This document shows, piece by piece, positions 3,976 to 59,704 of a stretch of 64,000 bases of DNA (its first letter is position 1; each line of letters begins with the position of its first letter). The notes under the pieces were generated by a model. The model saw only the letters and a program-made list of their open reading frames with translations. It searched no databases and was not told where the DNA came from. The translations under genes were made by a program, and so were the position numbers. The DNA lies in the NCBI GenBank assembly GCA_030704615.1, contig CM060733.1, positions 65,720,001 to 65,784,000 of the forward strand, read 5' to 3'. This stretch comes from Takakia lepidozioides. Taxonomy: Eukaryota; Plantae; Bryophyta.

Positions 3976-4124
3976 GAAATGATAGTGGGGTCTACCCAAC
4001 ATAGGTGGGAAGTTAGCCCATAATTGCACTTGACTGAAGGGGTGATATTGGACTGACTTTGGTGACAGTGGATGGAATCAGTGTGCTGTCCTAATTCTGG
4101 GTTTGGGTGGTATGGCTGATCTCG

Positions 4125-4700
4125 CACACATGTTGGCCATATCTGGCGATTAGCGTGTTCCATGAGACAATATCTCGTTCAGCCATGTTCTCAAACTCTC
4201 CCTTCGCAGCTTCGATGCTGCCACATTTGGCATACATGTCCATCAGGCCGGTATTGTTTGCAATGACATCTGGTTCAATTCCAGCTTTGATGATGTCACC
4301 ATGGACCTCTTTGCCCTTTCGCAGGGCTGCCAGGCTTGCACAGGCATCTGCTGAGGCGACATGCACCTGACAGGGCACTACCTTGCTTCCATCTTGCCAA
4401 CAGCTTCTTCCAGCTTCTTGATCTGAGTGTGGACTGCAGAGCAAGCAGGCGCTTCTCTTCTATGGCATGGCGGCAGGAGGACCACCGCCTTCACCATTGC
4501 TGCTTACACCCTCCTTGTGCTGCGAGCTGCGTCCCTCCTGTTACTGCGACCTCGATGTCACACACTTCTGAGAAGCCACTACCTGCACTCGCAGTATACA
4601 AAGGTCCTCCACAGTCTGGATTCGCATTCACCCGGCCAGGGCCGCATTCTTCCATCCCGCCATGTTCTCTCGCAGCACGGCCATCCATGTCACTTCCAGG
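4125..4700 (-). pseudogene. Inverted PPR gene fragment (N-terminal region plus one L-S-P motif set)
   Basis: Minus-strand translation ACASLAALRKGKEVHGDIIKAGIEPDV..MDMYAKCGSIEAAKGEFENMAERDIVSWNTLIARYGQH is the same family as 1-3975. Assignment of 4450-4700 as N-terminal region is tentative. Confidence 0.8.
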
Positions 4701-16065: not shown

Positions 16066-17510
16066 AGGACCGTTCACACTTAGTGATACACAGGTAAGTA
16101 GTCCACGTGGCAGCCACTATCACCTGAGCTACCACCGATAATAAATTTGTTGATAACTTATTTACAAGCCCGCCATAACCTTTGCAATTTCAAGATTTGC
16201 GCGACTATTATTAGCGGTAAGTTATCTGTTTGAAACCACAGCACCTAAGTTACCATTTTCCATTGAGTCTCCTTCCCCGATCGATGCTCGAGCTTGAGCT
16301 TTCGTGCATAACGGAGCTTCAGTGTGCTGCGACAATAGTCAAACCAGCGCGATGGCGATGATACAACCTGCACTGGCAGCTGCTTCAGGTGATAGCGAAT
16401 CTGTAGAGACGGCAGGAAGAGAGAGAGGGAGAGGGAGAGGGAGAGGGAGAGGAGGGGGAAGGAGAGGAGGAAGAGTAGTGGGGAGGGGAGTTGGTGCAAC
16501 ACCACAGCGTCAAAGACAAGGAAATTGGAAGCATAATGAGGTGCTTGTTCTCATCAAATGTAAACATGAGAGCATGTGGCACAGAAGGCGTTGGTGGATC
16601 CCCGAGCACATATGGTGTCTGCTGCAATCAAGTGGACCAGAATTTCGGAAGAGCTGCAGAAGGTTATGAAAACTATGATTCCTCGAAATGGGAAGATGTG
16701 CAAAGAGAAATGGAATTGTCTTAATTCAGACTACAAGAAGGTTTCAGACTATCACAAAAGAACCGGCCATAATACATCATATTGGGAGTTGACCACTGAT
16801 GAGCGCGATAAATATCACCTGCCTCGCCAATTCAATAGAGACTACTATGAAGCGATTGAAGCATTCCAGGGGGAACACATAATTAATGCACATGTTCATG
16901 TGAGGGATCTGAACGCCCCTGGGGATGGAAACTATGTTGCACCCACGCCAGAAATTGAGATATAAGAGGAACAAGGGGAATCAACAACACAATCTCGTTC
17001 ATATATGGCAGGTTTTCTTGGCCAAGACTTCATACCAGAAGCACAAGGTGTAGTTCTAGAACGGGAACAGGGTAACCCAATACGTGTAAACATTGTCAAC
17101 CTCGATGATTACTCTGAGTGTACTCAGCGAGCCTTTCCTAATGTGGTCAATTTGTCGGATGTTCCCAGTCAGGCTATGCCTGCACCATCAATCGGCCAAC
17201 CAACAACCCCTGGAGTACCGGCGTTAAGCGCAAGCGCACAAGCATATTCTCACCAGTAATTGAAGCTAATGACAAGGGGAACAAAGTAATTGTAGAGGCA
17301 ATGGATCGCATAAACCTAACGCAGCTGGAAATTGAGGAGCGGCGTAGTAAGGTTCAGGAACGTACTGCAAAAGATCAGCTAGTATACCTCAAGCAAAGAG
17401 ACAAGAAACTTCGGAAAAGAAGCAAAGAAATGGTGACTGTGCTCTCTAATTTGAGCATGGCAATGTGCCACGCATTCATACAGGATAAACGACTAATGCC
17501 TCCCCCCATG
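16066..17510 (+). mobile_element. PIF/Harbinger terminal repeat plus Myb/SANT (trihelix-type) accessory ORF pseudogene
   Basis: AGGACCGTTCACACTTAGTGATAC follows TTA and matches the 7587 repeat at 22 of 24 positions. ORF pieces WKHNEVLVLIKCK / KWTRISEEL..RNGKMCKEKWNCLNSDYKKV and a coiled-coil tail (17301-17500) follow, with a frameshift and stops. Confidence 0.85.
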
Positions 17511-28920: not shown

Positions 28921-28953
28921 GAGCTTATGGTCTAGGACTTTGGAAAGTCCTAG

Positions 28954-30175
28954 TTGTCATTTCGGACGTGACGTAGCGCAGACACATCAGCGTCACGTCG
29001 GACGTGCGTCAAATCACGTCCAATCCGGACGTCGCGCCAAGTATTTTTTTTTACTTTTAATTTTTACAGTCTACTTCCACTCTATATAATGACATGGCAG
29101 CCACAGTGTAAAACACACGTGGACAATGTTGTCATTTTTATGATTCACCAAAATAAAGGTCCCAAATTTTGGTGGGTGTTAATTATTAAGGTTAAAAACA
29201 AAGAACAAAACGGAGCAGCCAAAACAAGCGACCACCGATATTGGCGGTCGCTGCTTTTGTTTATTTAAAAAAATAAAGCGACCGCCATGGCAGTCGCTTC
29301 ATTTTTTATTTATTTTTTAAATAGTGACCGCCAATAGCAGTCGCTTCATTTTATTTTATTTTTTTAAAAAAAAAACGACCGCCAATATTGGTGGTTGCTT
29401 CATTTTTTAAAATAAAAAAAACAACGACCGCCAATATTGGCGGTCGCTGCTTTTTTTATTCTTGCAAATGAATAAATCAGGGGCAGGGGCAGGACACCGG
29501 GTTCGAACCCCAAACCTCTCGAGAAGTGCCTCGTCACGTGGAGAGGCGCGACTGGTCCGAACAATCCACACACGGACACGGGCAGGGCAGGGCAAGGCAG
29601 GGCAGCGGGTTTGAGCCCCCGACCTCTCAACAGGCGCGAAACACGTGGCAAGGCGTGACTAGTCAGTCACGCGACACGTGGCGAGGCACGATTTGGCCAG
29701 TCACCCCTCTTCATGCACAAGGTTCTTGGGGGGCTATATAAACCCCCTCCCAAGCCCCTCCCCTCTATGATCATTTTTGCTCCTCCGTGAGTGCAGTTCC
29801 TTGGCTTTTTGTAGTCTTCGGACTTCATTGCTTGGCACTGCTATCGCGAGGTGCAAAAATGTTTGTTAGGGGAGGGAGAGGTTTTGTCGGTTTTTTATTT
29901 GGTCAGTCTCACAGTTCAGCCCTTCTTCATCGTTTTACCGTTTTAGCATCCCTTCTTTACCGTTTTACCGTTTTAAGATCTCTTGTGGCCTTTTTTCTAG
30001 AATACATAAAGATACCCTCCACACGTCCATTACCATTTTTTTTTTCCATCGCTTATAGTGGGCAAATGGTTTATATAATGTCGGGGAATGTGAGCTCAAA
30101 TACTGGGCCGGGGTCGTAGTTTGGGGGTCGGGGTAAAAACAGGAAGAGAAAACATGCCCACGAGCGACCACCAAT
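28954..30175 (+). mobile_element. DNA-transposon-like terminal region, copy 1 (ACGT-rich end, GCGACCGCC palindrome array, TATA, start of an NLS-bearing ORF)
   Basis: Collinear with 34064-35600. Preceded by the perfect hairpin CTAGGACTTT-GG-AAAGTCCTAG (28932-28953). Confidence 0.65.
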
Positions 30176-31390
30176 ATCGCCTATAAAAGATGAACTGTTC
30201 TCTGTCATTTATGGAGTTGGGGCGCATTCGAAGGTGGTCTCGGAGTGGGGTGTACCTAAGATGGACCGACATTAGAAGGTTCGGCATGTGAGGAACCATG
30301 GTTTTGGTGGGCAGCACGTCGGTTACAGTGGAATAGTAGTGGCTGGTTGTCGCCATCCGATGGTTTAATTTCCGCATCTGCCAAAGTACATGCAGCAGCA
30401 GAATGTTGCATGTGTGTGGAAAATAGATTGATCCTGTTGGGGGATGCCTCCGCGTGAGCCTGGCCACGTGAGCGTGTGAGCACGTGAGCGCATTCAGGCT
30501 CATACCACGTCAGCAGTTCTCGCCACGTTGGTTCACGGGTGTCACGGCACGTCAGGAGTCCTCGCTAGCGTGGTTGACGCCACGTCACGTCACGCCACGT
30601 CATTTCCATAGGCACGGACCTATGACCGTGGACAGAACAGGCGGAAGGGGGGGAATGCTAGATCGTGAGCCCAGAGGCGTGAGGTAGGTGCCTATTTCCT
30701 CAGAATGATTTACCCTTTCCAGTCATTGCAGACTACATCTTTAACATCCATGCCACTGCCGGGCCTCGTGTCATAAACTGCGATTTGATAAGTTTGCGAT
30801 TGCCGAAGTGAAACCTTTATCACTCCCATGAAAGGGAGAATGAGCGTGCTAGTTACAACAAGCTTTTGTATCAGTCGATAACAAGGTGTGCAGTAGCAGT
30901 TCCCAGTGCAGATCCCCAACCCTCAAAGTTAGCCGGAGTGGAATTGAAGCTTTCCTACGTAAAAATCGCCCAGATGCAATAGACTGATTTAGTAATGGTC
31001 TATATACTAAGCCCTTGCATGTTTGGAAATGGTTGTGTTTGAATAAAACATTCTCCGGGATGGTCGAGAAGAAAGTCTATGTATCAGTTTGTCTTGACAC
31101 AAGCGAATGCACTTCTTATGGATGAATGTTTGTGGATCTGGATGCATAGTTCTCTGCATAGATTAATGTGTCTAGCTCGTGTGTATACGTACGTACGTAT
31201 TTGCGGCAGATATACATACATAGTCGCAATATGTATATGTTATCGTAGAGGAAAACTAACCGATACAGGGAGGTAGACAGGCAGGGAGGGAGAGGTGATG
31301 GCGGGCGTGACAGAGATGGAGGAGAGACGGCGCGAGGCAGACTTCGCGATTAGCATAGCATCAAACTGTGTGTTCAATCATGTTCAAATC

Positions 31391-31730
31391 CTAAACCCTA
31401 ACCCTGACCCTAAATCATAACCCTAAACTCCATCTAGCAGAGGTGATGATCGTTGACGATCATCACAACTACCCAAATGCCAAAACAGAGCAGAAGTGAT
31501 GATCGGCACCGATCATCATTTTTTTTTTCCCAAAAAAAACAAAAAACAAAAAACAAAAAAAAGAATGATCGGTGCCGATCATCAATTTTATTTTTATTTT
31601 TATTTTTTTTCCCGTATTTTTCCACCAAAAAAAAAAAAAACATGGTAGTTGTGATGATTGTTAACGATCATCACTTCTGCTAGATGGAGTTTAGGGTTTA
31701 TGACTTAGGATTAGGGTTTGCGGTTTAGGG
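31391..31730. repeat. Long inverted repeat with telomere-like (CCCTAAA/TTTAGGG) outer arms and nested GATGATCG..CGATCATC palindromes
   Basis: 31391-31475 is the near reverse complement of 31641-31730. The centre holds A/T tracts and two more palindromes. Confidence 0.85.
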
Positions 31731-34063
31731 CTTCTTTCCTCTCTTGAACATCGATTCAAATACAACGTGACTTAACGTTCAGAGATCCGTTCCATAATCA
31801 AATCTGCTGCTGCTACAAAAGATGACGTGGTGATGTCAGTCGGAGTGCCACGTCAGCATACCCGCTCCATCTCAACATGCTCACGTCACGTGGCATGACC
31901 TTACGCTCACGCCACGTACGCTGCTGTGAGCATAGGCTCCCGCCACATCACCGTTGTGTGAGCGTGTGCTCACACGCTCACGCGTGGGGCTCACGCCGTT
32001 GCGTCGTTGGATCCTGTTGTTCCTTAATGCCCGCTGAGTTGATGGGGAGCTGGATTGGTTTTGAGATTGTGGTGGAGCTGGTCATATCGATGTGGCATGT
32101 TCTTGGTCCGTTAACTGCACAATTCGTTCGGCATCATCGTTTGTATGAACAGGGTTGCGTACGTGGCTCGGTCCTGGTAGTTGACCATCCCCGAGATCCA
32201 TTGGGCCACTACCGGTGGCTTCAGTGTCTAGTGGTACAACGCAAGAGTCGACCCCAACTTCGATCTCAAGACCATGTTCTGGGGATGACATAATTGCAGC
32301 ATGGCCCTCATCTGCAATACGTACATCATCAAGAAGGTCATCAAAGGTTGGATGGATATAGGCATCGTCCCCTATAAACATAAATAGGTCATCCCCATTG
32401 TTGTGAGCATCATCGGGTGGGGGTAAGGAGGGGGTGGTGTGGGGTTTAGTTTAAGGGTGACGCGGAAGGTTTTGAATTTGGGTGGAGAAAAAGTAAAGAA
32501 GGGGGTAGAACAGGTGTCACGAATGTACGGCTGCGGCCACGAGGTGGCGGGCAGTGTTTGGTATTGGGTTATAGCCGGTGGGTAACACCCAGGTAGTAGT
32601 ATGAATTTATGTAGATTGGGGCTTGGGTTAATATGGGAAGGTCGATTTTTGAATTTCGGGGAGGGAGGTAGCGAATGGGGGAGGTATAAGAGATGATGGG
32701 GGAGTGTATGGGACGGGTATATGTGGGGTAGTTCGGTTGGGAGTGGGTGTCGTGTAAGGAGGGTAGATGTCGTGTTTTGTTTTTTTTCATTAGTAAGAGT
32801 GGGTAAATAAAACCCATTGACGTCAGAGGGGGGGGTATAAAAGGTGTCGTTGGGCAGGCAATGATATGGATAACTGCGTGACGGGTTTGATTTGACAGTG
32901 ACGGGGTGGGTTTTCAAGTTGATTGAGGGGAGGTGGATCAGTGATGAGATGGGACAAATGTCAAGTGTATGGTACTTGAGAAGCAAGGTGGGGGGGTTCG
33001 ATTGGCTTAGGTTTAGACCAGGTGTACAATACCATTGCGTCCTTTTCGTGCTACGCGGGTTGCTGCCGTGATGGAGGTGGTGTGCTTGTAGTAGCAAGCA
33101 TGTAAGGGGGAGCAGCAAGGTGATTGGGGGGCCACCACACTGCAGAGGGGCCAGAGTAATGTTGCGGGCGTAGCGTCTGATAGTGTAGTTGCAATAGTAG
33201 GCAATGCTGGTGTATAGATGGACGTGGGTAATCGCTAGAACGTTGCAGATGTTGCTTTATTGAGGATGAGATTACAGAGCGGCCGCAGCCAGCAGAGAGG
33301 AGAAGGAGTAGATAGAGTATATTAGAGAAAGATGAGCAGGGCGAAGATGGGGGGGTGGCAAAGCCCACTGAGCAACCCTGGAACTTGGGGGTCGCATCTG
33401 TTGTTTACGCATGGGTATCTTTGGTAATCATGGTGTTGGTACCTTCGACAGAGGTGTTTGTTGTGCAATTTGCTGGTGGCCAGTTCTTCATGGGCTCGGA
33501 TATTGCAGGTTTAACCCCTAAGCGCCGGGAGCCAAATTGGAAAACACCCCCAAAATGGGACCCATTATCATGAATAACCCCGTATCTGCCAGTATGAGTT
33601 CATCCAGGGAATTGACCCGTACTAACTGGTTCTTACCTACTCCACTAAGGTACTGATCAAATTTCAGAATAAATGACCGTCAATTTAGGGAGATTATAAC
33701 GAATCACCATGGTGGATTTATCAAATCCAAGCAAATGTGGACAGAAAAAATCACTTTGACTAAGGAAATTTACAATCACAATTTTTTTTCCAAAAAAATC
33801 TACTAGCTGGTTTGTATGTGCAATTAGGGGGGTGCACTTGGTGTGAAACAATAGTGACATAGAAAATACTGCATAGATCCTGCACATTGTAACCAAATGC
33901 ACTTTCCTTTGGTGCAATCCCGCAGTGCCCAAAGGTGAACAAGAATGTGAAATTGTTTTTAGAAAAATCCAAAAGCACAAGTGTAGATGGGTGCACATAT
34001 TTACCTACCACGTGGCAAGTCAACTGTGCTGGCAGATGGATTCCAGGGCTTAGAATAATCCTT

Positions 34064-34237
34064 AGTTATCATTCCTGACGTGACGTGGCGCTGACACATT
34101 GGTCGTCACGTCCGACGTGCGTCACGTCGCGTCGAATCCGGACGTTTATCCATGTAATTTTTTTTACATTTGTTTCTTACGATTTACTTTGATCCTTTGT
34201 AATGACATGGCAACCACGATGTAAAACAGACGTGGCC

Positions 34238-34290
<53 letters not shown>

Positions 34291-35900
34291 GTGTCCGCCT
34301 ATATTGGCGGTTGTCGGTAATTTATTTATTTTTAAATGAATTGACCGCCCATATTGGCGGTCGTTTGTATTGTATTATATCTTAAAATAAGCGACCGCCC
34401 AGATTGGCGGTCGCTCGCACTTTATTATATTATTATTAATATATCTTTGATATATTCTGTAAAAATGTGGCGGTCGCTATATATATATTTTAAATTTAGC
34501 GACCGCCATTTAGCAGCGGTCGCTTATTTTTATTTGTATTCTTAAATAAAGCGATCGCCGTTTGGCGGTCGCTTCTTCAGTTAATTTTTGAAAAATGCAG
34601 CGACCGCCATTTGGCGGCGGTCGCTATTTTTGTTAATAAAGAATACAACGACTGCCATTTGGAGGCGGTCGCTCGATTTGGTTGTGATTCTTAAATTAAG
34701 CGACCGCCATTTGGCGGTCGCTTACTTAATATTTTTTTTTAAATGAAGCGACCGTCATTTAGCGGCGGTCGCTTATTTATGTTTTGAATCTTGAATTAAG
34801 CGACCGCCAGTAGGCGGTCGCTTATTTAATATTTTTAAAAAAAAGCAGTGACCGCCATGTGGCAGTCACTCTTCTTGTTTTTATAAATATAGCGACCGCC
34901 ATGCGGCGGTCGCGTGTTTTTTTTTTTCTTAGAAATCTAGGGACCCGCCGTGTGGCGTTTTGTTTTTAATTTTTTAATCATGAAGCGGCGCCTGGCCAGC
35001 CACGTGACGAGGTGCCACGGGTCAGGAAAAACGAAACAAATGGGATGGGGGGAGGTGGTTTTGAACCCTTGACCTCTCCGATGTGGGTGCGCGTGACAAG
35101 GTACGACTGGCCAGTCGCGCCACGCTGACACGTGGCGAGGCGTCACTAACATGTCGTGCCTTTTCAAGCATAATGTCATTTGGGGGGAGGGGGGCTGGTG
35201 GGCGCCTATATAAACCATCCCCCCTCCTTTTCTGATCACTTTTGCCCCTCTTGTGGTGCGGTTCCTTGGCATTCTGTAGTCCTTTCGGACTTCGTTGCTT
35301 GCAGTGCCAACGGGAGGTGCAAAGGTGATTATTTGGGGGGGGGGGGGGGGGGTTTCTATCGGTCAGTCCCACACACTTGTTCACAGTTATCATCGTATCA
35401 CTATTTTGCCATTTTCGAATCTTCGACGGCTTGTTTTTTTACAGAAAACTACGAAGACACCATCCACACGCGTTCATTGCCGTTTTCTGAGGTTTTGGAC
35501 CCTGTAGTGGGCAAAGGTTTATACAATGTCGAGGGTTGTGAATTCAAGTTCTGGGGCGGGGTCATCTGGGGGTCGGAGGAAGAGAAAACGTGCCCACGAG
35601 CGGGATAGCCAGGTCAACAAGCCAGACTACCCGGGACCGGATGCCTTGGATAGGGTGAAAGAAGTGGTAGTGGATTATTTCAAGGGTAGGGACATGATGA
35701 GGCTAGAGAGTGCTTATGTCAGGCATGGATGGGAGGGGTTTCAGATTTTCCAGCAAAACATGGAGAGAAAAATGACAAACACTTTGGCGGGGGCTAAGTG
35801 GACGGCGGACAGGGACAAGCCGAAGTTCAATCGGTGGATCCAAAGCAGGGCGAAAAACGCCATGTGGAATTTGAGGCAGCTAATGAAGACATGGAAGGGT
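34064..35900 (+). mobile_element. DNA-transposon-like terminal region, copy 2, with ~12 AGCGACCGCC-N-GGCGGTCGCT palindromes and a truncated ORF from 35526
   Basis: Palindromes recur at ~50-bp period over 34305-34915. TATAAA at ~35209. ORF start MSRVVNSSSGAGSSGGRRKRKRAHER matches the decayed start in copy 1. Confidence 0.7.
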
Positions 35901-41351: not shown

Positions 41352-41685
41352 GCAACGGTCATAGGGGGAGAAGGACCTCCCGATGAAGGAGGTTCGGCAA
41401 TGTTATTTAGAATTATATATTGAAAGGCAATGTTTCGCGAATGGAAGGGTGGTACTGCTCTGTACAATAGGGGCCCATTTTAGCCTACCAGCCACTTGCA
41501 AAATCCACCCACACTCCCAATCCCAAACGAAATGAGCAATGACGCATTCTCGGAACGATGGACACAGAATAGAATAAAAAGAGGGCACAATGAGGTTTTA
41601 TTGATCCACATGAATTGCATTTGAAGCACGTCTACTGTGCTGATTGTGCAATCAAATCTTTAGCCCTGTGCCTACTGAATACAAG

Positions 41686-42249
41686 TCACGTTGTCAATGG
41701 GACTTCGACTGCTCTCAGAACTAGCTCATGAGTCATGGGGCTCCTCCAGGTAAAGTCGATTGCAGCCGTTGTACCGTCCCTAGTGATGTTCACCACAATG
41801 TCCTGCCCTTCAATCATACCACTATCGAATATGGAAATCTTCACGTTTTCGTCGTCCACACCAATGCGAATGTCCCCATACAATGGAGAAGAGGAGCGCA
41901 CTCCTTCAGGAGAATAGGTCTCTCCGATGGAGTCCACCCACGTCCAGTGGCAGCAGTTCCACCGCAACAGCATAGCAGTGCGCCTTCTTCTGTATGGGTG
42001 ACCGTCGTAGCTGGGAAAATCGGAATCGAGGATGCGCAGGAGCCACGGACTCCTCAGACCAAGATCGTCACCCCGCTCGAAGGCGTAGTGGCCTAGGATA
42101 TACTCAAAAGCCACCAATGTTTCCACAATCGAACCAGTATCTTCTCTGTAATCTGTGTACCAGATAACAATGTCTCCCGATGTGGCCGAATACATTGCAT
42201 AATCGATGCCTCCAAATGGGCAGTCGTCCCGGTTCCGGAAGCACGGCAT
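41686..42249 (-). CDS. Unknown ~187-aa protein, paralog 1 (MPCFRNRDDCP...)
   Basis: Intact ORF collinear end to end with 42806-43381. CAAGG precedes the ATG. AATAAA lies ~85 bp downstream. Confidence 0.75.
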   Translation of the reverse strand: MPCFRNRDDCPFGGIDYAMYSATSGDIVIWYTDYREDTGSIVETLVAFEYILGHYAFERGDDLGLRSPWLLRILDSDFPSYDGHPYRRRRTAMLLRWNCCHWTWVDSIGETYSPEGVRSSSPLYGDIRIGVDDENVKISIFDSGMIEGQDIVVNITRDGTTAAIDFTWRSPMTHELVLRAVEVPLTT

Positions 42250-42805
42250 CCTTGCAAAGGAGGACCTGAGGACGACTTGGATGCCGATGACAATGACCTT
42301 GCGGACAGCTACGAAGCCCTTAGATTTTGGAAATGATGCGAAGCGGAAGAGCAGTCCGGCCTCCAATAATGGAGCATCTGGGTCCCACGTACCCACCGAC
42401 GGAGGTGGAACGTGTTCATCACGCCAGCGGTGGATGAACCCATACATCTTTCTCATCAACAAGTTATAGTTTGAGATCTGCCACCGAAGTCCATCCCCCC
42501 GGATGGAAATTCGGCGCCGCATTTACATCGAAGAGGGGATGGACTTCGTCGTGTCCAGTGGCTATCGGCCCACCTGGCAGTGACTGCCCATAGTTTGCAT
42601 GGCAGGGTAGGAAACTGAAACGACTACATTCATGCAGCAGCCAATCTTCATCGGTCCAGGATCCTGTAGGGGGGAAATTTAAATGTGCCCTGGAGTGTTT
42701 GTGAGGAATTGCAGCGTTAGCTTGAACTTTTTCCAGCCACCGCGCTGCTCCTCCTCCATCCGGGAGCTGCTGTCATTGAGCGTACTCCGCTACTCTTTTT
42801 CAAGG

Positions 42806-43381
42806 ATGCCGTGCCGCCGAAATCCAGCCGACTGCCCTTATCATGGCCACGATTATGCTATGTTCAAACCAGAATCAGGAGACATCATTGTCTGGCTTTC
42901 TGTTTTCACAGACGCTGCTGGAATCAAGCAAGAGTCTTTGCGCGCAATGGAGTATCTGGAGGGCTATTACCGCTTTGAGCGAGGTGAGGGCGAGGGTCAA
43001 TGCGGTCCGTGGGTCCTGAAAATTGTTGACCTCGATATACCAAGCTGGAAAGGGATGCCGGACAGATCACGCACGGCCTCGCTTTGGCACTGGAACTGCT
43101 GCCAGTGGACCAGGGAGGACGGCACCGGGGAAAACTATATACGTGCAGATCACTCCGCTCTTCCAGTGTATGGAGACATTCGGCTGAGTTGCGAAGACGA
43201 ATCGCACGGGCACATGAGGCCCACAGTGACCTTGTCAATGTATGATGGTGGTATCATTGATGGACATGACATTGTCGTCGGCTCCAGCAAGGGCAGCAGA
43301 ACGACCGAATTGCAGTTTACCTCGAGGTGCCGCAGCAGTAATGAGCTTGTTTTGAGGGGTATCGAAGTTCCGTCGACTTGA
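42806..43381 (+). CDS. Unknown ~191-aa protein, paralog 2 (MPCRRNPADCP...)
   Basis: Intact ORF sharing DYAM, SGDI.W, FERG, PW.L.I.D.D.PS, WNCC.WT, P.YGDIR, D.G.I.G.DIVV and ELVLR..EVP with paralog 1. AATAAA at ~43454. Confidence 0.75.
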   Translation: MPCRRNPADCPYHGHDYAMFKPESGDIIVWLSVFTDAAGIKQESLRAMEYLEGYYRFERGEGEGQCGPWVLKIVDLDIPSWKGMPDRSRTASLWHWNCCQWTREDGTGENYIRADHSALPVYGDIRLSCEDESHGHMRPTVTLSMYDGGIIDGHDIVVGSSKGSRTTELQFTSRCRSSNELVLRGIEVPST

Positions 43382-43799
43382 TGAAGCCCATGTAGAAGGA
43401 GGAAGGGCTTAGTTTTGTCTGCAGTTGGTAAATGTGAGACATCGTGTCCGATCAATAAACCCATCGTACCTCACTTCTGTATGATTGTGCTTCATTCTGT
43501 TGAATAACTGTCGGAATTGGCCCACTGTTTACAATTTGATGTCTCATTTCTACAATTTGTCTGTCCGGATGAATATACCAGAGTAACCGGTATGAGAGTC
43601 ATGTGTCAAGAATATACCAGAGTAACGCCATGTCGGACATTGAAATGTATGAACCGCATTTCAGTGTCGGACAATGGAATGCGGTGCATCATTTCCGTCC
43701 AGGTACACGAAATACCAACACGGGTCTATAAATTGGACAGACAACGAGGTTGGCATTGCAAATGCGGCGACGCATTTCCAGCTTGGCAATGGGTCCACA

Positions 43800-44215
43800 A
43801 TGTCGATTAAGAGAGTATTGGATTTGTAAGCTGTCGGATCTTTTTCGGCAAAAATGTAATAAAGTCGTTTAAGGTATATTGGATTTTTGGAGGCTTTCGG
43901 CCACCGATCATTGAATGTCGTCATATGCTTGACGCAGTTCTCACTGCTATACGTCCTAACCTTGTGAAAGTAATTCCCGAATAAGGCCTTTGTGATGGTC
44001 AGGACATTTGTTTCAGGTCTCGTGTTCCAAAGACAAACGAAAAACTTTTTGACGACCCATTTCAGGAAGTCGTCAAGACCATTTCGTGTAGGTAACTTGA
44101 ATTTCCCTGCGGAAATACAAGGCTAGGTAGCGGGAGGGGATTTCGGCCCATCTGTTAGGTAAACCTCACAAATGTAACCGATGTCCAGAACCAGGACGTA
44201 GTATCCTGGCCGACA
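43800..44215 (-). pseudogene. FCP1/NIF domain segment D, truncated after NTLLID
   Basis: YYVLVLDIG..RNGLDDFLKWVVKKFFVCLWNT..SENC..IYLKRL..YKSNTLLID. Confidence 0.72.
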
Positions 44216-44702
44216 TCCTTTCGGTCCCCAGGAAGTACTCTGGACGGACAGCAATGGAGTCGAACGGAGGGTAAATCTTGTCATCCTGTGGAATAACAAA
44301 AGAGTTATTTATTAATTATAACTACACAAAGCGCAATGTAGAAAAATGGAAAAAATAGCTGTTAAAGGATTACCGTTCTGGGAGGCGGCTGCTGCGTTCC
44401 TTGATTGGGCTGCTCGATATTTTTTCTTTTTCTCTGCGGAACGACCTCCTAAGACTGTATCTTTGGAGATGGCAACGTCGGCTGTACAGTGGAGGCCGGC
44501 TCAGATGATGTGACCTTGATTGTCAGATCCACCTGCCTCTTCACCGTTTGAGTCTCGATGGAGTTAGTTCGTGTGTGTGTGATTTCCTCTGATTTCGATT
44601 CACGAATCTACAGGAAATTGAAGAATCCGTTAGTGGACAAGAAATTGCAATAACCATGGTTAAGAATGTAGTTAAACCACTAAGGGTCCCCCATCGCGAT
44701 TC

Positions 44703-44935: not shown

Positions 44936-45349
44936 ATGGCAGAGAGAATTATATCCGAGTACTAGTGCTTCTCAGATCACCGCGACCCTTTCGAAGACAA
45001 GCCGGATCCGAAAGAACTCAACATGTTGTCACATGAATGGTAAGATTTGATTGGAACAGTAGCAAGAACATTGACACACTCGAGAGACTCACGAGGGGGC
45101 GGATGTCCAACTTAAAAAATTGACGAGGTCCTATTTTCCTTTTCTTTTTTAAAAGGAAAAAAGGTCCACATCAGCAGTGTCACCGTTTAAAAGCCCAAGA
45201 ATGGGAGTCTGAAGTGTGCGGGCAGTTGAAAGAGTGGAAGGGGGAAGGCAATGCGGTGGAGGGGAGGGAAGGATTGTTGTGGGGGGAAGGGTGATTGGAG
45301 AGGGCGTGGGGAGTGCGGTGTGCTTTGCTGTTATGAGGGCTTTAATTCC

Positions 45350-48300
45350 ATGGATTTCGCACAGAGAGTTGTGCTGTCCGTCTTGTTGGTGGTGCTGACA
45401 GTTAGTGCGGCGACATCAAGGATGGAAAAATGGGATGGAAAAATTGCGATGCTCACGAGTGATACAGATGACGGTGCCGAAGGCGGCGTGCGGTGGGCCG
45501 TCCTCGTTGCGGGGTCAGCTGGTTATGGCAATTATCGCCATCAGGTTGTTTGAATTCCAACTTCTTGGGAGCACTGCCTTTCTCGTATTAATTTGGACTT
45601 GAATTTTTCCTGTGTTCACTTGTATGTGTGACTTGTAATGGATCGACTGGAAAATTCCTTTATCCGCCCCCCGTCCCTCTTTGTGATGCTATTCTGACCG
45701 TCGCTTGCAGTATGTTCTTGAATCGCAAATGTGGTCAAATCCATCTCTTCTTGTGGTTCTGTGTACACGCTCTAACTTCTTGGAATGTGCTCGTGGTCGA
45801 TGCGTAGGAGGAGCTGTAAAAGATGTCACTTGATAGTTAACTTCCTCAATAGCGTATGACTAGATTATTGAATTATATACACTACGCATGCTGCACGCAG
45901 AATTGCACCTTCCTTCCCAAATTGTGGCTCCCGTTCTTCGCATTTGACCTCAATGTGTTACTGTTGGTGTACAACTGAAAAGTAAGCTTCACTTTCGAAG
46001 CTTCTCTACACAAAGTTAGCAACTTAGGGGACTTCGCTAAAATATCAGAGCCATCCACTCCATTTCATAGGGCTCTTGCGAATTGATAGGGGTTTTTCTT
46101 GATTTCCTTCGCACATAGCGGTGTTGAATTGATGTGACGTCCAGGCGTTGAGTCAGAGTAGTATTTACATTTTATGGTTATCTGCATTCTGAGTGAGAAT
46201 CCTCTTGAAATGTACAATATTGTAAGGACAAAGATAGTCCTCAAATTTGGCTTCTGATGTGCCCTTTTTTGGTGAGAGTCATTTCCTCTTTTCTGTTTGT
46301 TTGATTTGTGATTTCTTGTGACAGGGATAGGCGTCAGATTAGGCCCAAATTTGTGGACCTTCGTTGGTGAGAGTCACTTCTTCTTTTCTGTTTGCATTGT
46401 TTTATGATTTCGTGTTTGCTTCTCTATAGGAGAACCCTGTTGTGGTCCTAGTGATTGCCACCCCATGCCAACATCATTTTGTTGAAGAAACAGAAGTGTA
46501 GATCTGATCAGGTGGATGTTTAGATTGCTGGAATTAGTTTGAAGAGGAGGCCGACGGTAATATGGTTGGTTAGTACCTCGGATCTTAAGCGAGAGTATTC
46601 CTGACCACTGTTCTTATTTTTATCATTTCTGAGTAAATTTCTGACAGTCATCTTTGAATTTGACCAGGCTGATGTGTGCCATGCGTATCAAGTTTTGAGG
46701 AGGGGAAGGTTGAAACATGAGAATATTGTAGTGTTCATGTATGATGATATTGCAACCAGTCATGACAACCCTTATCCAGGTATCATCATCAACCATCCGC
46801 AAGGCAGCGACGTCTACCAAGGAGTTCCGAAGGTTTGTATTCTTGCTTTGACACAGAGTTCTTGTGTTTCTTCACCTGCTTTGGCAATCTGTTCAGTTAC
46901 ATCTTCAGAAGGAAAAAATAGCTGCAAAACCATTGTCATGAGGTCTCCTTATTGTGTTAATTGGGGTTGCTTGTAGCGTTAAGGGCTGTCTTTAGTTGGT
47001 CACTCCAGTTGTCTTTATGTTGCAATTAACTTTTTCTACCCTGTTAGATAGGCAAAAATGATCTTCAGCGAGGAGTGCTGTGAGACTAGGTGTTGGTTAC
47101 AAAATCTTACTAAGAGCTACCAATAACTTTAGCATGAGATTGCAAAACAAATCATGAGTGAGTTGAAAAATGTTCCACTGAGGACAATGCCATAAGTCTC
47201 GTCACAAGCTGGCAAGTCCAACTAAAGGGTCATATACTGATGATACAGCAGGTGCACTACATACACCTTCGCCAGGTTGACTATACTAGGGCATATTGTA
47301 AGAGTAGGTTTGCTTGATCTGTTTGAATTTTGGTCATGTCTGCTGGGGATGGGGTATTCAGGACTACACAGGTAAGGCTGTAACAGTGAGCAACTTCTTT
47401 GCAGCAATTTTGGGTGACAGAGATGCCATCAAGGGTGGTAGTGGCAAGGTGGTTAACAGTGGCCCCGATGACCATATCTTCATCTACTACTCTGACCATG
47501 GAGGCCCTGGTGTTCTCGGTGTGCTGCCACATCCCTTTTTTTTAAATTTAATAGCTCTTGACTGCCAGGAGGAGCTTGTTCCACTCCTGCAGTATTAAAG
47601 GAAATTGCCCTAAATGGAGATGGGGTGAACATTCCAGATCAGGGTGTAGAAGAGAGGGTCCATTTACTATAGTATAGAGAGCTTAAATCTGCAAATAGAC
47701 TTCATCTACATTTGGGGTAAGTTCATTGACATTTGGTAGCTGGGCTCTCTCTCCCGCAGGTATGCCCACCCCACCAAATCTGTATGCCTATGATTTTGTG
47801 GAGACGCTGAAGAAAAAGCATGCAGCTGGCACCTTCAAAGAAATGGTTCTCTTATTTTCCTCTTTATGACCCTTCTGCCTAATTTAATCATTGCACTCAC
47901 CATGGCACAAATGTTCAGGGCAAAGGAGTGCATTTGCATTTAGCTTTTATTGTCCTAGAAGTCAGATTTTCAGCTCGGCATATCCTGACTTCTCAAAGTG
48001 GCTTTGATGTAAAACATGAAAGTCTTTTTTATGTCCAAGCCAAGGACCATCAATCAAAATCTTGGAACTCCCTGCAAGTACCTGCAACCTCCATGTGAAT
48101 GGGATGCAGGTGATTTATTTGGAGGCATGTGAAAGTGGAAGTATATTTGAGGGGCTTTTGCCAGAGGGTCTCAATATTTATGTCACAACTGCATCAAATG
48201 CGGAAGAGAGCAGTTGGGGGACATACTGTCCTGGCATGTTCCCGCCACCACCAGACGAATACAACACCTGTTTGGGGGATCTCTACAGTGTTGCATGGAT

Positions 48301-49763
48301 GGAAGACTCGTAAGTATAAAAGTGTGTAGGCATACCTTCTGGTTATTTCCTGTGGTTTTGTTGCTGTATTTTTGTGAGATGCTGCTGCCCTCACAGGATC
48401 ATGTCTTTGGCCATAGTAGGCAGCATTTTGCAGTCTGTGTGGTACAAAGGGTATTTTGGAGACTGCCTCTATCATACAATATTTCAGCATTCCACTATGG
48501 CGGTCTTCTGGACAGGACAGATCCTTGAATGCAACTGCCAGGTGCCACAATATTCATGGCAGAGTTCTGAGAGGTCTCTCCCATGTGGTCTTTGGGTGGC
48601 AGTGAGATACAGAATCTGAAGAAAGAGACACTGGAAGATCAGTATCTCATTGTGAGTTTCTGCTTTAGTCACCATTTGCTCACTTTATTAAATGTTTCTA
48701 GAAAACAGTAGAAGCATCTTGGTGATGAATCATCCGAGAAAGGGATGAAGGGAATTTATGCTGAGACTGTCATTCCAGTCAGATCTTGTGAGGTGTATGG
48801 TGGTTGGGACATCCGCAGGGGTAGTATATTCTGTCTTTCTTCTCATCTTGGCAGATTTCTTATGCAGGTGAAATCAAGGACCTCAAATCACAACACGTAC
48901 AAGACTGGGTCGCACGTTATGCAGTATGGGGATATGGGCATCAATGTAGAGGAGCTGGACCTGTACTTGGGCTTTGACCCTGCTTATGAGAATGTCAGCA
49001 GACCTGTGACACCCAACGCCAGCTGGGCCAACACCCTGGTAGAGGCGGAGGTGGCCATCAACCAGCGTGATGCTGACCTGCTCCATCTCTGGCTAAAGGT
49101 TTACTCTCTGCCTTCCCCTCGTCAAGTTGGTTGTCTCACCAGGACATTTGTGTAGTTACCTTGAGACAACATGTTCAGGGTGATTGAATGGTAGGTCAAA
49201 TGTTAGAACAGGTGGCCTGATCTAAACTGGAGTTTCCTGGATGTCAACAGTATCACAAGTCAGCAGAAGGATCAAAACACAGGGCAGAAGCAGGCGTAGA
49301 GTTGATGGGCACTATGAGCCATCGGATGCACCTTGACAACAGTATGAAGCTTGTGGGCAAGCTTCTCTTTGGTGCAGAAGAGGGACCTTCCAAATTGAAT
49401 GCCGTGCGTCCTCATGGGCAACCTCTCGTGGATAACTGGGCCTGCCTTAAAGCCATGGTAAGGTCAGAGAGAGGGCGATATATCCACTGGATAACATGAT
49501 TAATGATTAATTCAGATATGAGTGGAGCAATATGTCTATTGCATAAGATGTATCTCTGTTTCTCACACTCATTTGTTTGTAACTGGATGTAGGTGCTCAC
49601 ATTTGAATCAAGCTGCGGAGCATTGATGCAGTACGGGATGAGACACATGCGGGCTTTTGCCAATGTATGCAATGCTGGCATTGACTCCATCAAAATGGCA
49701 ACGGCAGCTGCCGAGGTCTGCCCAGCAGCATCTTTGGCCCAGCAATGTGGCGGCCCGTATTGA
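45350..49763 (+). CDS. VPE: Vacuolar processing enzyme / legumain (asparaginyl endopeptidase, peptidase C13), 9 exons, ~486 aa
   Basis: GT-AG exons: 45350-45544, 46668-46832, 47362-47518, 47760-47845, 48110-48309, 48603-48651, 48868-49098, 49251-49457, 49593-49763. Signal peptide, [26 protein letters not shown], catalytic SDHGG and [30 protein letters not shown]. Confidence 0.96.
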
Positions 49764-50492
49764 TTGGTTTTAGTGCTTAGAAATATGATGATCCTTGCAC
49801 AAGTTCTACAACCCTCAGGGTAGTGGAAGGCAAGCCTAAATCTGGTGTACGGAGAGCTCACCCCAATCAACTATGGGTGGAGTGTCACTTATATAGTGCA
49901 GTTATTAGGTGGGGAAATTGATGTGAATTTGAAATTGATTCTAACTCTACAGTTGAGCAGGTTGACTAGGAAGTCTCTCTTACAAGAGGTGTATACGATA
50001 AGGTATCTACAGTAGGGTGGTAGTGTGTAACACATTTAGATTCTGTACTACAGGATAGCAGATTAGTCTTCCAACATTGGGATTGTGAGATAGTGATGAA
50101 TGTGAGATATATCCCTCTCTGGAAACACCATTGACCTTGCTGCAAGATAATTATGAAATTTAAGTGCTCTTGCCAACATCTTGTTGCTTGTCAGGTCCAG
50201 TAATTCCACAGCCCAGTCTTGTGCTTGGATGCAATGTAGCCTCAATCATATCACTCACTCAAGCATCACCAACTTAAAAAATCAATCAGAACCACTTTTG
50301 CAGCCCACTAGATAAACTCGATACTCTCAGACACTCTTTTCACTCTCAGACAGATTGCAATTGAATCAAACATTGGAAAAAGCAAACCATGCAACGCATT
50401 ACATGTAAGTTATAGGACTGGTACACGCTCCTCACTGAGGGAGAGGAGGGGGTGTGAGATCACACGCAGGTACAGCAGAATGCATTGGAGTA

Positions 50493-51923
50493 TCAACCAT
50501 ATGTGTTTACAGCCTCCCAGAGAAGGCTCTGGGAAAGTGGTGGAATCGGCTTGGAACAATCACGTGCCTGCAACGCAGCAGCCCGGAGAGTCCGGATGAT
50601 CATTGCGTTGGCCTCCCAAAAGCTTACAGTCTGATAAGGCATGCCATATTTCTCACACAGAGGCCTCACAAATTTCACGATCTTCCTGAGATTATGGCGT
50701 GGCAATGTCGGGAACAGATGGTGTTCGATCTGGAACTGCAGACCACCATGGAACCAGTCCATACAAGGAGGAGTAGAAAGATTGAGGGTCCCTCTCGCCT
50801 GTGATTCAACCCAGGCCTTGCTCTTTGGCTGGCCCTGATAGATCGGGGAAGAGAAATGGTTCAAGCAGAATTGAACATGTTGAATGCCAGTTACTGCAAA
50901 ACTTACCAGCACGAACGCTACTCTGGTTTGTAGATTTGGCAAATATGATAGAAGGGAAGAGAACCAGACCCAGAAGAACGAAATGGCCAAAATCTCCACT
51001 CCCCTGTTTGGGACTTTTCTTTTGGAGACAAGCAGCAGAATGGACTGGGCAAAAAGATTAAGTCGCGCCAATGCCATTACAGGATAGAAGGTCCAATGCT
51101 GGTAGCTCACAAGGAAGCGCGCAAATCCATCAAATGGCATTTTCCTGTCGTAGAAATAAGAGTAGAGATTCCCAAAAAACCTGGAGGATACTGCAAAGAG
51201 AGGGATGTACTGGAGGTCTGGATCATACTCCACACTGTTGCAAGCAATGTGATGTGCATTGTGGTTCCTTTTCCACCATCCCATGCTAATACCGGTCAAG
51301 CAGTCCCCCACCAGAAGCGCAATCCACGCGTCTATCTTACGGTCTCCAAGCATCCCACAGTGGCCAGTGTCGTGCCCAATCCACCCACTCTGATTCCATA
51401 CCACTCCTAACAAAAACGCACTTAATAGGTGCATCAAGAAACTTTCAGAATACACCACCCCCAGCACAGAGAAGATGAACATAGGAATCATTACCGCTGC
51501 ATACTTGCAATACACATCCACAGGGTTTTTGTACAGACCAGCCTTTTTAAGGTTCTGCAGAAGCTCTCTGTGCTCTGCGGCAATAGAGGGGACTTCATAA
51601 TCGCACAGGTTTCCCACCAGAAACTTCGGGAGAAGTAGCCAGGCTGTTCCAGGGTGAAAGGCGAGAAACGCATCCGTCACGTCTTGGCCCGCTAAGTGCA
51701 AAAGAGGAATGTCGCCCCCGGGGTGCCTTCCCACCCACTCTGTCACATTGTATACCTTGCCTTGGATGGAGATCCACAGATCGTCCACCTTATTGTGCAG
51801 TGCGAGCTCCTTACTGCTTATGAGTCGTGAGCCCAATCCTTCCCGGGCGTCCTTCGTCGCACCCTCCACCTCTAGCTCTTGCTCTTGCAGAAGCGTCTGA
51901 TCACAATCCATGGAAGGCTGCAT
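50493..51923 (-). CDS. SLD: Cytochrome-b5-fused sphingolipid delta-8 (front-end-type) desaturase, single exon
   Basis: HPGG heme motif; His boxes HDTGH, HNAHH and QIEHH; plant SLD-type YDPDLQ, WWKRNHNAHH and C-terminal LWEAVNTYG. First ATG at 51923. Confidence 0.93.
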   Translation of the reverse strand: MQPSMDCDQTLLQEQELEVEGATKDAREGLGSRLISSKELALHNKVDDLWISIQGKVYNVTEWVGRHPGGDIPLLHLAGQDVTDAFLAFHPGTAWLLLPKFLVGNLCDYEVPSIAAEHRELLQNLKKAGLYKNPVDVYCKYAAVMIPMFIFSVLGVVYSESFLMHLLSAFLLGVVWNQSGWIGHDTGHCGMLGDRKIDAWIALLVGDCLTGISMGWWKRNHNAHHIACNSVEYDPDLQYIPLFAVSSRFFGNLYSYFYDRKMPFDGFARFLVSYQHWTFYPVMALARLNLFAQSILLLVSKRKVPNRGVEILAISFFWVWFSSLLSYLPNLQTRVAFVLVSFAVTGIQHVQFCLNHFSSPIYQGQPKSKAWVESQARGTLNLSTPPCMDWFHGGLQFQIEHHLFPTLPRHNLRKIVKFVRPLCEKYGMPYQTVSFWEANAMIIRTLRAAALQARDCSKPIPPLSQSLLWEAVNTYG

Positions 51924-52115
51924 TGTAAAGAGCAATACAGATTTCTTCACCCGAGCTCAGCAAGCTCTTCAATGGCGATTGCGATGGCGGCCTCACATTC
52001 CGCTTCCCCCTCGTCCCACCCTCGTCCCACGGGCCGGGTCACTCCATACCCTACCCGATCCGACCCGACCCGGGATACAAATAGACCACCAAGTAGTGGG
52101 CTCATTTGTATTTTA

Positions 52116-56990: not shown

Positions 56991-57803
56991 GGTTCGGTTA
57001 CTCAAAATTAGGTTCGGTAGTTGCCGAACCTATGTAGTCGTTGCCGATTACAGACTCTGGGCCGAGAGGTCTGGGGGCAAATACCCACGAGAATATGGGC
57101 ACGGTAGAAAGTCCGCGGGAATAGGTACACTATAAAAAAATTCTATAAAAAATAATGGAAGGCATGAAGTGTAGTTAGTATGAGCAGGTAATTCAAATGA
57201 GTGAGATCGCATATTGTTAATTAATAAAAATGGCGGGAATGAGATTTGAGCCCTGAATCAGCACTGTAACATGCAAGCACCCTTGTTTATGGCATGCACA
57301 GGAAGTTGAACTCGAGACCTAAAGAGAACGAAATTGATCATGCAGAGGATGTCATCCATTACAGAAGATTCTTCTGGCACGTCCCACGATGATATTGGAA
57401 GTGCAAACGGCTAAAAACAAAATAGAAGGAAAAAATATCGGCCAGGTGGAAAGTGGACGGTGGCATGGTAGGTACAGCGGCATTAAAAAACTTATTTTGA
57501 AACAACCGAAAGTTCCAAAATAGTATAGGATATGTTGTTCAACATCTACCAGGTTTCGTCTCGAGCGAAAGCGACAAAGCGTACATGGCTACTTGTAGTC
57601 TACACTGACTACAAGCACATTGCTCTCTGCCACTTTCTCTTTCAACAGCAGGGCTGCTATTTCAACACCTACTTTCTTTTGTCAAAGACAGCAGCTTTTT
57701 CGGCTGGTTGTCACTCGTAGTCTGCAACGACTACAAGCACACTGTTTGGGGTTACTTTCTATACCAATCAGTTGTGTTTTTGGATAGTCCGTTCTTAGAT
57801 AAG

Positions 57804-58334
57804 ATGGACGGGAGCTCTTCCAATGCAGGCGCAAGCAGTAGTGGTGTCAGTGGAAATGGGGAGGACAGGCCTGCATCGACTTCATGGTGGACTCCCTTTA
57901 CGGACGATATCGCCGAGTGCCTTGCCAAGTACGAAAATGATAAGGCAATGGTGGTTCAGCAGACTGTCAATGGGAACGGCCCTTCAGCAGGGGACTCCAC
58001 TGCGGATTCTGACGACGACGACGACGACGACGATGATGAAGATGAGCACATGGACATTAATGGGGAAGGTGAGGAGATGGAGGTACATGAAGAGGATGAC
58101 TTGCGATGGACAGGGGCAAGCATGGAAATCATTGAAATGCATTCAATGGAGTTTGTTATCGTAGGAAATACATGTCCAACAACAAAAGAACGATGCATTG
58201 TTTGCCAAGACTGTCCAGTAGAGGGCTTGTCAGTCCGTATTATCAGTGGGTGCGGCCATTCCTTTCACTCTATATGCATTGAAGGGTGGTTGCTTCGAAA
58301 CGGGTCATGCCCTGTTTGCCGCAATAAGATTTGA
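57804..58334 (+). CDS. RING-H2 finger protein with acidic poly-Asp/Glu tract (putative E3 ligase), single exon
   Basis: CIVC..CGHSFHSICIEGWLLRNGSCPVCR (C3H2C3) in an intact ORF. Confidence 0.85.
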   Translation: MDGSSSNAGASSSGVSGNGEDRPASTSWWTPFTDDIAECLAKYENDKAMVVQQTVNGNGPSAGDSTADSDDDDDDDDDEDEHMDINGEGEEMEVHEEDDLRWTGASMEIIEMHSMEFVIVGNTCPTTKERCIVCQDCPVEGLSVRIISGCGHSFHSICIEGWLLRNGSCPVCRNKI

Positions 58335-58539
58335 GACATTGTAGTCGCTGCAGAAAAAAAAACTTATATGTACGTCATGATATAGAAGTGGATAAAGGAG
58401 GCAATGATCATTGAGGTCGGCAACGACCATCAAGAATAAAAAGAAATTGTACCTCTTTGACGTTTTGTACTTTAGCTACTATTTTCAAAATTTTGAATGG
58501 AGTGTTGTGCTTAAACTGTTTTGTTCAACCCATGTCTTG

Positions 58540-59670
58540 TAGTCGGCACAGACTACAAAAATTAAGTGAAAGAAGATGGATATGGAGTCATATTTGATTG
58601 CAAAAAAGTGGTAGTTGAAATATGAGCTAATCTGAGCAAAGAGTTGGAATTAATAATTTATCCAAATGGTCATACATTTTATAGTCGGCACAGACTACAA
58701 GAATTAAGTGAAAGAAGATGGATATGGAGTCATATTTGATTTCAAAAAAGTGGTGGTTGAAAAATGAGCTCATCTGAGCACTGAGTTGGAGTTAATAATT
58801 TATCCGAATGGTAATACACTATATAGTCGGCACAGACTATAAGAATTAAGTGAAAGAAGATGGATATGGAGTCATATTTGATTGCAAAAAAGTGGTGGTT
58901 GAAAAACGAGCTCATCTGAGCAAAGAGTTGGAGTCAATAAATTATCCAAATGGTCATACACTTTATAGTCGGCACAGACTAGAAGAATTAAGTGAAAGAA
59001 GATGGATATGGAGTCATATTTGATTTCAAAAAAGTGGTGGTTGAAAATGAGCTCATCTAAAAACTGAGTTGGAGTTAATAATTTATCCGAATGGTCATAC
59101 AATTTATAGTCGGCACAGACTATAAGAATTAAGTGAAAGAAGATGGATATGGAGTCATATTTGATTTCAAAAAAGTGGTGGTCGAAAAATGAGCTCATCT
59201 GAGCAAAGAGTTGGAGTTAATAATTTATCCAAATGGTCATACACTTTATAGTCGGCACAGACTATAAGAATTAAGTGAAAGAAGATGGATATGGAGTCAT
59301 ATTTGATTGCAAAAAAGTGGTAGTTGAAAAATGAGCTCATCTGAGCAAGAGTTGGAGTTAACTAATTTATCCAAATGGTCTTACACTTTATAGTCGGCAC
59401 AGACTACAAGAATTAAGTGAAAGAAGATGGATATGGAGTCATATTTGATTGCAAAAAAGTGGTAGTTGAAAAATGGGCTCATCTGAGCAAAGAGTTGGAG
59501 TTAACTAATTCATCCAAATGGTCATACACTTTGTAATCGGCACAGACTATGAATATTTCAAGCAAGTCCATGTTTCGAAACCTGTTAAAAGAAGACCTTA
59601 TCCGTGGAAAGAGTTGGAGTTCACAAGATAATCCAAGTTGTCACGCACTTTGTAGTCGGCACAGACTACA
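58540..59670. repeat. Tandem array of seven ~142-bp units plus one degenerate unit
   Basis: AGTCGGCACAGACTA-type anchor at 58541, 58683, 58825, 58967, 59108, 59250, 59392, 59535 and 59654. Confidence 0.95.
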
Positions 59671-59704
59671 AGGATACCAAACATGCAGGATATCCACTGC
59701 GTCT

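Follow-up and report, generated by a model that had tools for sequence, protein, structure and literature searches.

The question raised by this locus of the moss Takakia lepidozioides is why two adjacent genes stay intact among broken neighbors, and whether they serve the host or a mobile element. The window, i.e., the whole stretch of 64,000 nucleotides that was analyzed, contains a block of ~18 kb of transposon debris (from ~26.7 to 45.1 kb) that is bordered by host genes, namely a PPR gene at ~26 kb and a legumain gene from 45.25 kb. Within this block are two intact, divergent, head-to-head ORFs of ~190 residues, here denoted gene A and gene B (WNCC-A and WNCC-B).

Layout of the gene pair

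Gene A occupies positions 41686–42249 on the minus strand (187 codons and a stop) and starts with MPCFRN at the ATG at 42249; gene B occupies positions 42806–43381 on the plus strand (191 codons and a stop) and starts with MPCRRN at the ATG at 42806. Both reading frames stay open 5' of these MPC start codons, to 42522 in gene A and to 42683 in gene B, and the ORF listing gives the respective long forms, 41686–42522 on the minus strand (278 aa) and 42683–43381 on the plus strand (232 aa). The alignment of the two proteins runs from the internal Met-Pro-Cys to both protein ends. The start codons are separated by a spacer of 556 bp (42250–42805), an exact match to the head-to-head arrangement described in the initial annotation of this DNA. 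A BLASTP comparison of A with B yields 43% identity over 221 aa (E-value 3e-61), and the cores are 48% identical, in keeping with the earlier estimate of roughly 40%. A tblastn search detects no third copy of the WNCC genes in the 64-kb window. The contrast between the uninterrupted pair and its broken neighbors, also pointed out originally, is apparent throughout the surrounding block, where the pair is the sole intact coding unit.

Evolution of the two coding regions

In the codon alignment of A and B, identity is 0.70, 0.68 and 0.53 at the first, second and third positions, respectively, so that the third positions are the least conserved. The Nei-Gojobori method (NG86) gives a dN of 0.425 and a dS of 0.83, that is, a ratio of ~0.5, which corresponds to moderate rather than strong constraint; given that pS is already 0.50, the true dN/dS is probably below ~0.5. 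All three indels between the two genes (1, 1 and 7 codons) are in frame, and the remaining five frames contain 2 to 9 stops each. In substitution-only neutral simulations run at the observed A/B divergence, 187 codons remain open in one lineage in 1–4% of the runs, and both ORFs remain open in about 0.01–0.14% of the runs.

The codon-position bias, the dN/dS value, the in-frame indels and the simulations, taken together, indicate that A and B are true paralogs and that purifying selection has acted on their sense frames ever since they were duplicated. The purifying selection proposed in the initial annotation is borne out by the same evidence, with a probability of about 1e-3 to 1e-4 that both frames stay open by chance, and the comparison of dN with dS that it recommended, run here on A versus B, yields ~0.5 at a dS of ~0.8. 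The accompanying description of the pair as deeply diverged is too strong because identity at the third positions still amounts to 53%, short of saturation; the divergence is moderate.

Non-coding elements of the pair

Within the 556-bp spacer, one half is mostly unalignable to the other, the exceptions being the center and the two leaders. The center is occupied by an imperfect palindrome of 64 nt (42485–42548). The outer stem is a perfect 14 bp (CGAAGTCCATCCCC / GGGGATGGACTTCG), with GGCGCC at the axis, and the folding energy of the palindrome as single-stranded DNA is -21.3 kcal/mol (z -4.4).

The leaders are the stretches of 27 nt ahead of the ATG, at 42250–42276 (minus strand) in gene A and at 42779–42805 (plus strand) in gene B, and they are 70% identical over this length. 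The leader of gene A is pyrimidine-rich and has CAAGG at its end; as stated in the initial annotation, CAAGG is present ahead of the ATG in both genes. When translated, the leader would read VLRSSFAR in gene A and VLRYSFSR in gene B, with the consensus VLR(S/Y)SF(A/S)R and different codons at three of the six identical residues. Thus, the eight codons ahead of both ATGs (42250–42276 and 42779–42805) are kept as protein with synonymous differences. The similarity stops at a common TGTCAT(T/C)G...AG. Given this codon-varied conservation of the protein sequence and the end of similarity at a shared ...AG, the leader may be the start of an exon that follows a 3' splice site, in which case an upstream exon is possible. 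A shared region of 556 bp with conserved elements fits divergent co-expression from a bidirectional promoter, as suggested earlier.

On the 3' side of A and B, similarity is confined to a mirrored 13-nt motif, GATCAATAAA(A)CC. The copy of gene A (GATCAATAAAACC, 41594–41606, minus strand) includes AATAAA at 41597–41602, 83 nt past the stop, and the copy of gene B (GATCAATAAACCC, 43450–43462, plus strand) includes AATAAA at 43454–43459, 72 nt past the stop. Both motifs are likely poly(A) signals, and the AATAAA reported originally is accounted for in each gene.

An additional element is the 18-bp palindrome AAATGCGGCGCCGCATTT, which is matched twice across the window, each time with a single mismatch, compared to 0.01 expected matches. 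Site 1 (42507–42524) is at the center of the pair, and site 2 (AAATGCGGCGACGCATTT, 43760–43777) is 378 nt past the stop of gene B. A hairpin 3' of gene B (43642–43695) consists of the half-sites of the 18-bp palindrome in everted order (CCGCATTT, 14 nt, GAATGCGG) and so represents a third, everted site; 3' of gene A, there is no 18-bp palindromic site. With these conserved non-coding elements amid flanks that do not otherwise align, the pair forms a module.

Protein features and the search for relatives

The A and B proteins are hydrophilic and acidic in composition (17–20 K+R versus 28–29 D+E residues), and no transmembrane segments or internal repeats are detected in either of them. The four cysteines present in A are each conserved in B, namely C3 and C10 of the N-terminal motif MPCxRNxxDCP, with the spacing C-x6-C, and the CC of the motif WNCC. 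Perhaps these four invariant cysteines constitute a metal site.

A Pfam search identifies no family at E ≤ 1 for either A or B, NCBIfam and PHROGs yield no matches, and a PDB sequence profile search reveals no significant similarity (the best E-value is 1.4). The initial annotation had recognized no domain in these proteins, which agrees with all these searches, and the Pfam scan lacks the clear match to a known family that it had named as potential counter-evidence. Relatives of A and B are likewise not detected in a word search of 5.8 billion proteins, in a feature search of the ESM Atlas with each protein as the query, or in scans of metagenome contigs and IMG/VR viral contigs, and an exact look-up of four ORF variants gives no match. 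No homolog of A or B is found in other moss or plant proteomes or in the assembly-derived protein sets that were searched, whereas the neighboring desaturase used as the query produces hundreds of matches. The exact protein of this desaturase is itself absent from the protein collections searched, which suggests that the moss genome's own proteins are not included in them; therefore, the blank searches bear on relatives in other organisms only. By these sequence comparisons, the WNCC family is unrecognized by all the collections searched.

A HMMER search with the A/B profile against 1.84 billion representatives has a sole match, to an archaeal surface protein (P0001; E-value 2.1e-5). The aligned part of the profile is its C-terminal ~65 residues, which are placed on four repeats of P0001 that resemble CARDB-type beta-sandwich repeats, and the score is boosted by the repetition. 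Homology to CARDB through P0001 was considered and dropped: the hhalign probability is 21%, and A and B have no Pfam CARDB match. No further CARDB proteins are found in the HMMER profile search of the 1.84 billion representatives. The similarity to P0001 probably reflects either chance or a distant resemblance at the level of the fold.

Structure prediction with AF2 from the two-sequence alignment results in mean pLDDT values of 34.6 and 32.4 in two runs. The weak models of A and B consist mostly of strands, at pLDDT values too low to count as evidence, and the beta-rich fold that had been proposed for these proteins is not substantiated, given that it would depend solely on models with pLDDT of 32–35. 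The prediction of an A+B complex (ESMFold2-based) gives an ipSAE of 0.00 with chain pLDDT below 50, too weak to speak either for or against the heterodimer suggested in the initial annotation.

Genomic context

The host genes in the window include PPR genes of the PLS class (E/E+), a multi-exon legumain gene, a proline dehydrogenase exon and the desaturase gene. Tandem PLS-class PPR units that are 84–93% identical to each other occupy positions 1–4400, with the E and E+ motifs at 3123–3851. Pieces of a PIF/Harbinger-type DDE_Tnp_4 transposase together with a Myb/SANT-like (Myb_DNA-bind_4) ORF are located at 8424–9058 and 16576–16965, ~8 kb apart. On the other side of the block, the gene at 50493–51950 (minus strand) encodes, without introns, a cytochrome-b5-fused front-end desaturase that is 77–78% identical to the desaturases of Sphagnum and Physcomitrium/Ceratodon and 66% or less identical to those of vascular plants; these values put the genome with the early-diverging mosses, outside the groups of Sphagnum and Physcomitrium/Ceratodon. 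Just after a RING-H2 ORF (57708–58334), a unit of ~142 bp is repeated in tandem (58537–59675, copies 83–93% identical). The GC3 of the pair is 0.58–0.59, and that of the desaturase is 0.57. The observed/expected ratio of CpG is 0.81 in the pair (41600–43500) versus 0.39–0.52 in the neighboring host genes (45200–51923).

The block itself contains two palindrome arrays with ~50-nt spacing. Array 1 (29221–29469), with the half-site GCGACCGCC, is ~12 kb from the pair, and array 2 (34321–34945; GCGACCGCC-ATTT-GGCGGTCGC) is 6.7 kb to the left of it; the spacers in the arrays are AATATT and ATTT. The array flanks (28931–30166 and 34042–35602) are 70–78% identical, so that a single region of one element is represented here by two old, incomplete copies in tandem. 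In addition, there is a cluster of inverted repeats at 31390–31730 that is built on TGATGATCG...CGATCATCA and has arms of 55 nt with 95% complementarity.

When 103 stop-free segments of the block (26.5–45.4 kb, excluding the pair at 41.6–43.5 kb) are scanned with Pfam, the only matches are weak, namely a retrotransposon gag fragment and four NIF/FCP1-like (pseudo-phosphatase) segments, the latter on both strands and below the Pfam cut-off; no transposase, ParB or methyltransferase domains are detected in these segments. One of the NIF/FCP1-like segments (43664–44308, minus strand) is convergent on gene B; its 215 codons are interrupted by a single stop, and the catalytic motif DxDxT is degenerate (LDIGY). 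An extension of the mirror symmetry of the pair to the flanking NIF-like genes was considered as well and dropped, given that tblastx, blastn and BLASTP comparisons are all blank. No terminal inverted repeats or long-range inverted repeats flanking the block are found in the window, where the putative element is fragmentary, and no terminal repeats or target-site duplication are seen around the 1.9-kb unit of the pair itself.

Origin and possible functions of the pair

Considering the paralogy of A and B, the selection on their frames, the conserved non-coding elements, the palindromes, the lack of relatives and the transposon-rich surroundings, it seems somewhat probable that the pair represents lineage-specific accessory genes of a large DNA transposon family of this moss. 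The lack of relatives would be what is expected of a fast-evolving, lineage-restricted transposon gene. The evidence against this reading includes the lack of terminal inverted repeats in the window and of transposase, ParB and methyltransferase domains among the 103 segments scanned. Moreover, the pair alone has stayed intact as a coding unit while the block around it is degenerate, a situation that could equally point to host selection or a separate origin. Furthermore, prolonged methylation of an old transposon copy would not predict the CpG ratio of 0.81 in the pair, which exceeds that of the neighboring host genes.

Three other explanations of the locus have to be weighed. The pair might be a dead relic of a family that was once functional in an active master element, with the ORFs open only by virtue of a young or lucky copy and nothing expressed or selected now. 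The degenerate surroundings, with NIF pieces below the Pfam cut-off and no transposase, ParB or methyltransferase domain, fit such a history, and short ORFs fairly often outlast a few percent of divergence (our own estimate from the rate of stop creation in the simulations). However, not just the two ORFs but also both leaders, both poly(A) motifs and the central palindrome have remained intact, and the array flanks, at just 70–78% identity, suggest old copies in which ORFs of 190 codons should have been broken, so that a relic is a rather unlikely explanation. Persistence of A and B amid broken neighbors, clear purifying selection and a GC3 value close to that of the desaturase would also be expected of genes kept for the moss, that is, a lineage-specific orphan family or domesticated transposon genes located in repeat-rich DNA. 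The proteomes of other mosses and plants that were searched lack a homolog, even though the desaturase has hundreds of matches, and the private palindromic sites are of the same kind as those of a transposon; accordingly, a host gene pair is considered distinctly unlikely.

The remaining alternative is a self-contained selfish unit of ~1.9–2.2 kb, either a non-autonomous element or the remains of an ambisense virus or DNA replicon, that would have been inserted into older debris. The mirror symmetry ends at the poly(A) motifs, which would delimit a unit at 41594–43462 with flanks devoid of mirrored similarity, and the combination of two outward genes, a central stem-loop (with the hairpin z of -4.4) and converging poly(A) signals resembles the layout of small ambisense ssDNA viruses. 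Yet, Pfam, PHROGs and NCBIfam searches show no Rep/HUH, helicase, capsid or transposase signature, the IMG/VR scan is blank, the unit has neither terminal repeats nor a target-site duplication, and A and B are paralogs of each other, unlike Rep and Cap. Such an origin is very improbable.

Under the interpretation of the pair as transposon accessory genes, an old inverted duplication would have produced the two paralogs, and selection would then have held both frames open. Each gene would have one coding exon of ~190 codons and a separate poly(A) signal, with transcription directed outward from the common 556-bp region with the palindrome at its center. The predicted products are soluble acidic proteins of ~21 kDa with the four invariant cysteines. 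From these features, we infer that the pair is expressed and belongs to the element, and that the proteins serve the transposon, e.g., in regulation or anti-silencing, being selected for the benefit of the element. The 18-bp palindrome, at the center and behind gene B, is a candidate target of a dimeric DNA-binding factor, and it is speculation that this factor consists of the WNCC proteins themselves. A more elaborate scheme would have WNCC-A and WNCC-B form a hetero-oligomeric, Cys/metal-stabilized DNA-binding factor of novel fold that reads AAATGCGGCGCCGCATTT and, together with a ParB/methyltransferase-like gene and the phased arrays, makes up a system of transposon self-recognition or anti-silencing in an early lineage of land plants. 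This scheme is highly doubtful.

The initial annotation singled out the pair as the best novel-gene candidate of this DNA. What stands is that these are unrecognized genes under selection; what does not is the implied lone cellular novelty, given the position of the pair in transposon debris. The pair is best read as an accessory module of a transposon, of a kind that is new, and not as a free-standing cellular novelty.

Comparison with known transposon accessory genes

In maize, MuDR carries mudrB (MURB, ~207 aa), a small accessory protein encoded near one end of this Mutator element by a single gene that is convergent with the transposase gene and is driven from the terminal repeat. To our knowledge, mudrB has no relatives outside its own lineage. 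The resemblance to the WNCC proteins is one of description, namely an accessory protein of ~200 residues that is confined to its lineage; in contrast to the single mudrB gene, the moss locus contains two paralogs.

The VANDAL elements of Arabidopsis, which are Mutator-like, carry the accessory genes VANB and VANC beside the transposase, and these genes are fast-evolving and lineage-restricted (Hosaka et al. 2017, PMC5735166). The VANC protein relieves silencing and binds short element-specific motifs that are located in the non-coding DNA of its own family (PMC5735166). The moss pair is similar in that orphan genes in a transposon setting are accompanied by a private DNA motif. The differences are that the pair consists of two head-to-head paralogs and that it has a palindrome of 18 bp in place of the tandem short motifs of VANDAL. 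Pfam domains of the VANC (DUF1985) or VANB type are absent from A and B, which match no Pfam family at E ≤ 1.

Large multi-gene elements of algae provide another comparison. The giant Plavaka/Mutator transposons of red algae carry the accessory genes PAG1-3 (bioRxiv 10.1101/2025.02.11.637652), and Sola1 of Ectocarpus carries a ParB-methyltransferase gene (PMC12477816). In these giant algal transposons, tandem arrays of inverted repeats adjoin ParB-type genes, and several transcribed genes have no assigned function (PMC12477816; bioRxiv 10.1101/2025.02.11.637652). Arrays of the same kind are found 6.7 and 12 kb from the moss pair. Unlike in the algal elements, however, ParB and methyltransferase domains are not detectable in the moss window, and paired paralogs similar to the WNCC genes are not described in these studies of algae (PMC12477816; bioRxiv 10.1101/2025.02.11.637652).

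Large multi-gene DNA transposons with private DNA motifs have been noticed, in algae, only recently. To a moss element, the pair would add a sequence-orphan component, that is, selected paralogs tied to their own palindrome, and it bears on how such transposons escape or manage host silencing. The two small intronless proteins and the 18-bp site are reagents with which to ask whether transposons encode self-recognition factors. If the pair is instead selected by the host, it would illustrate how a transposon can give rise to a young gene family.
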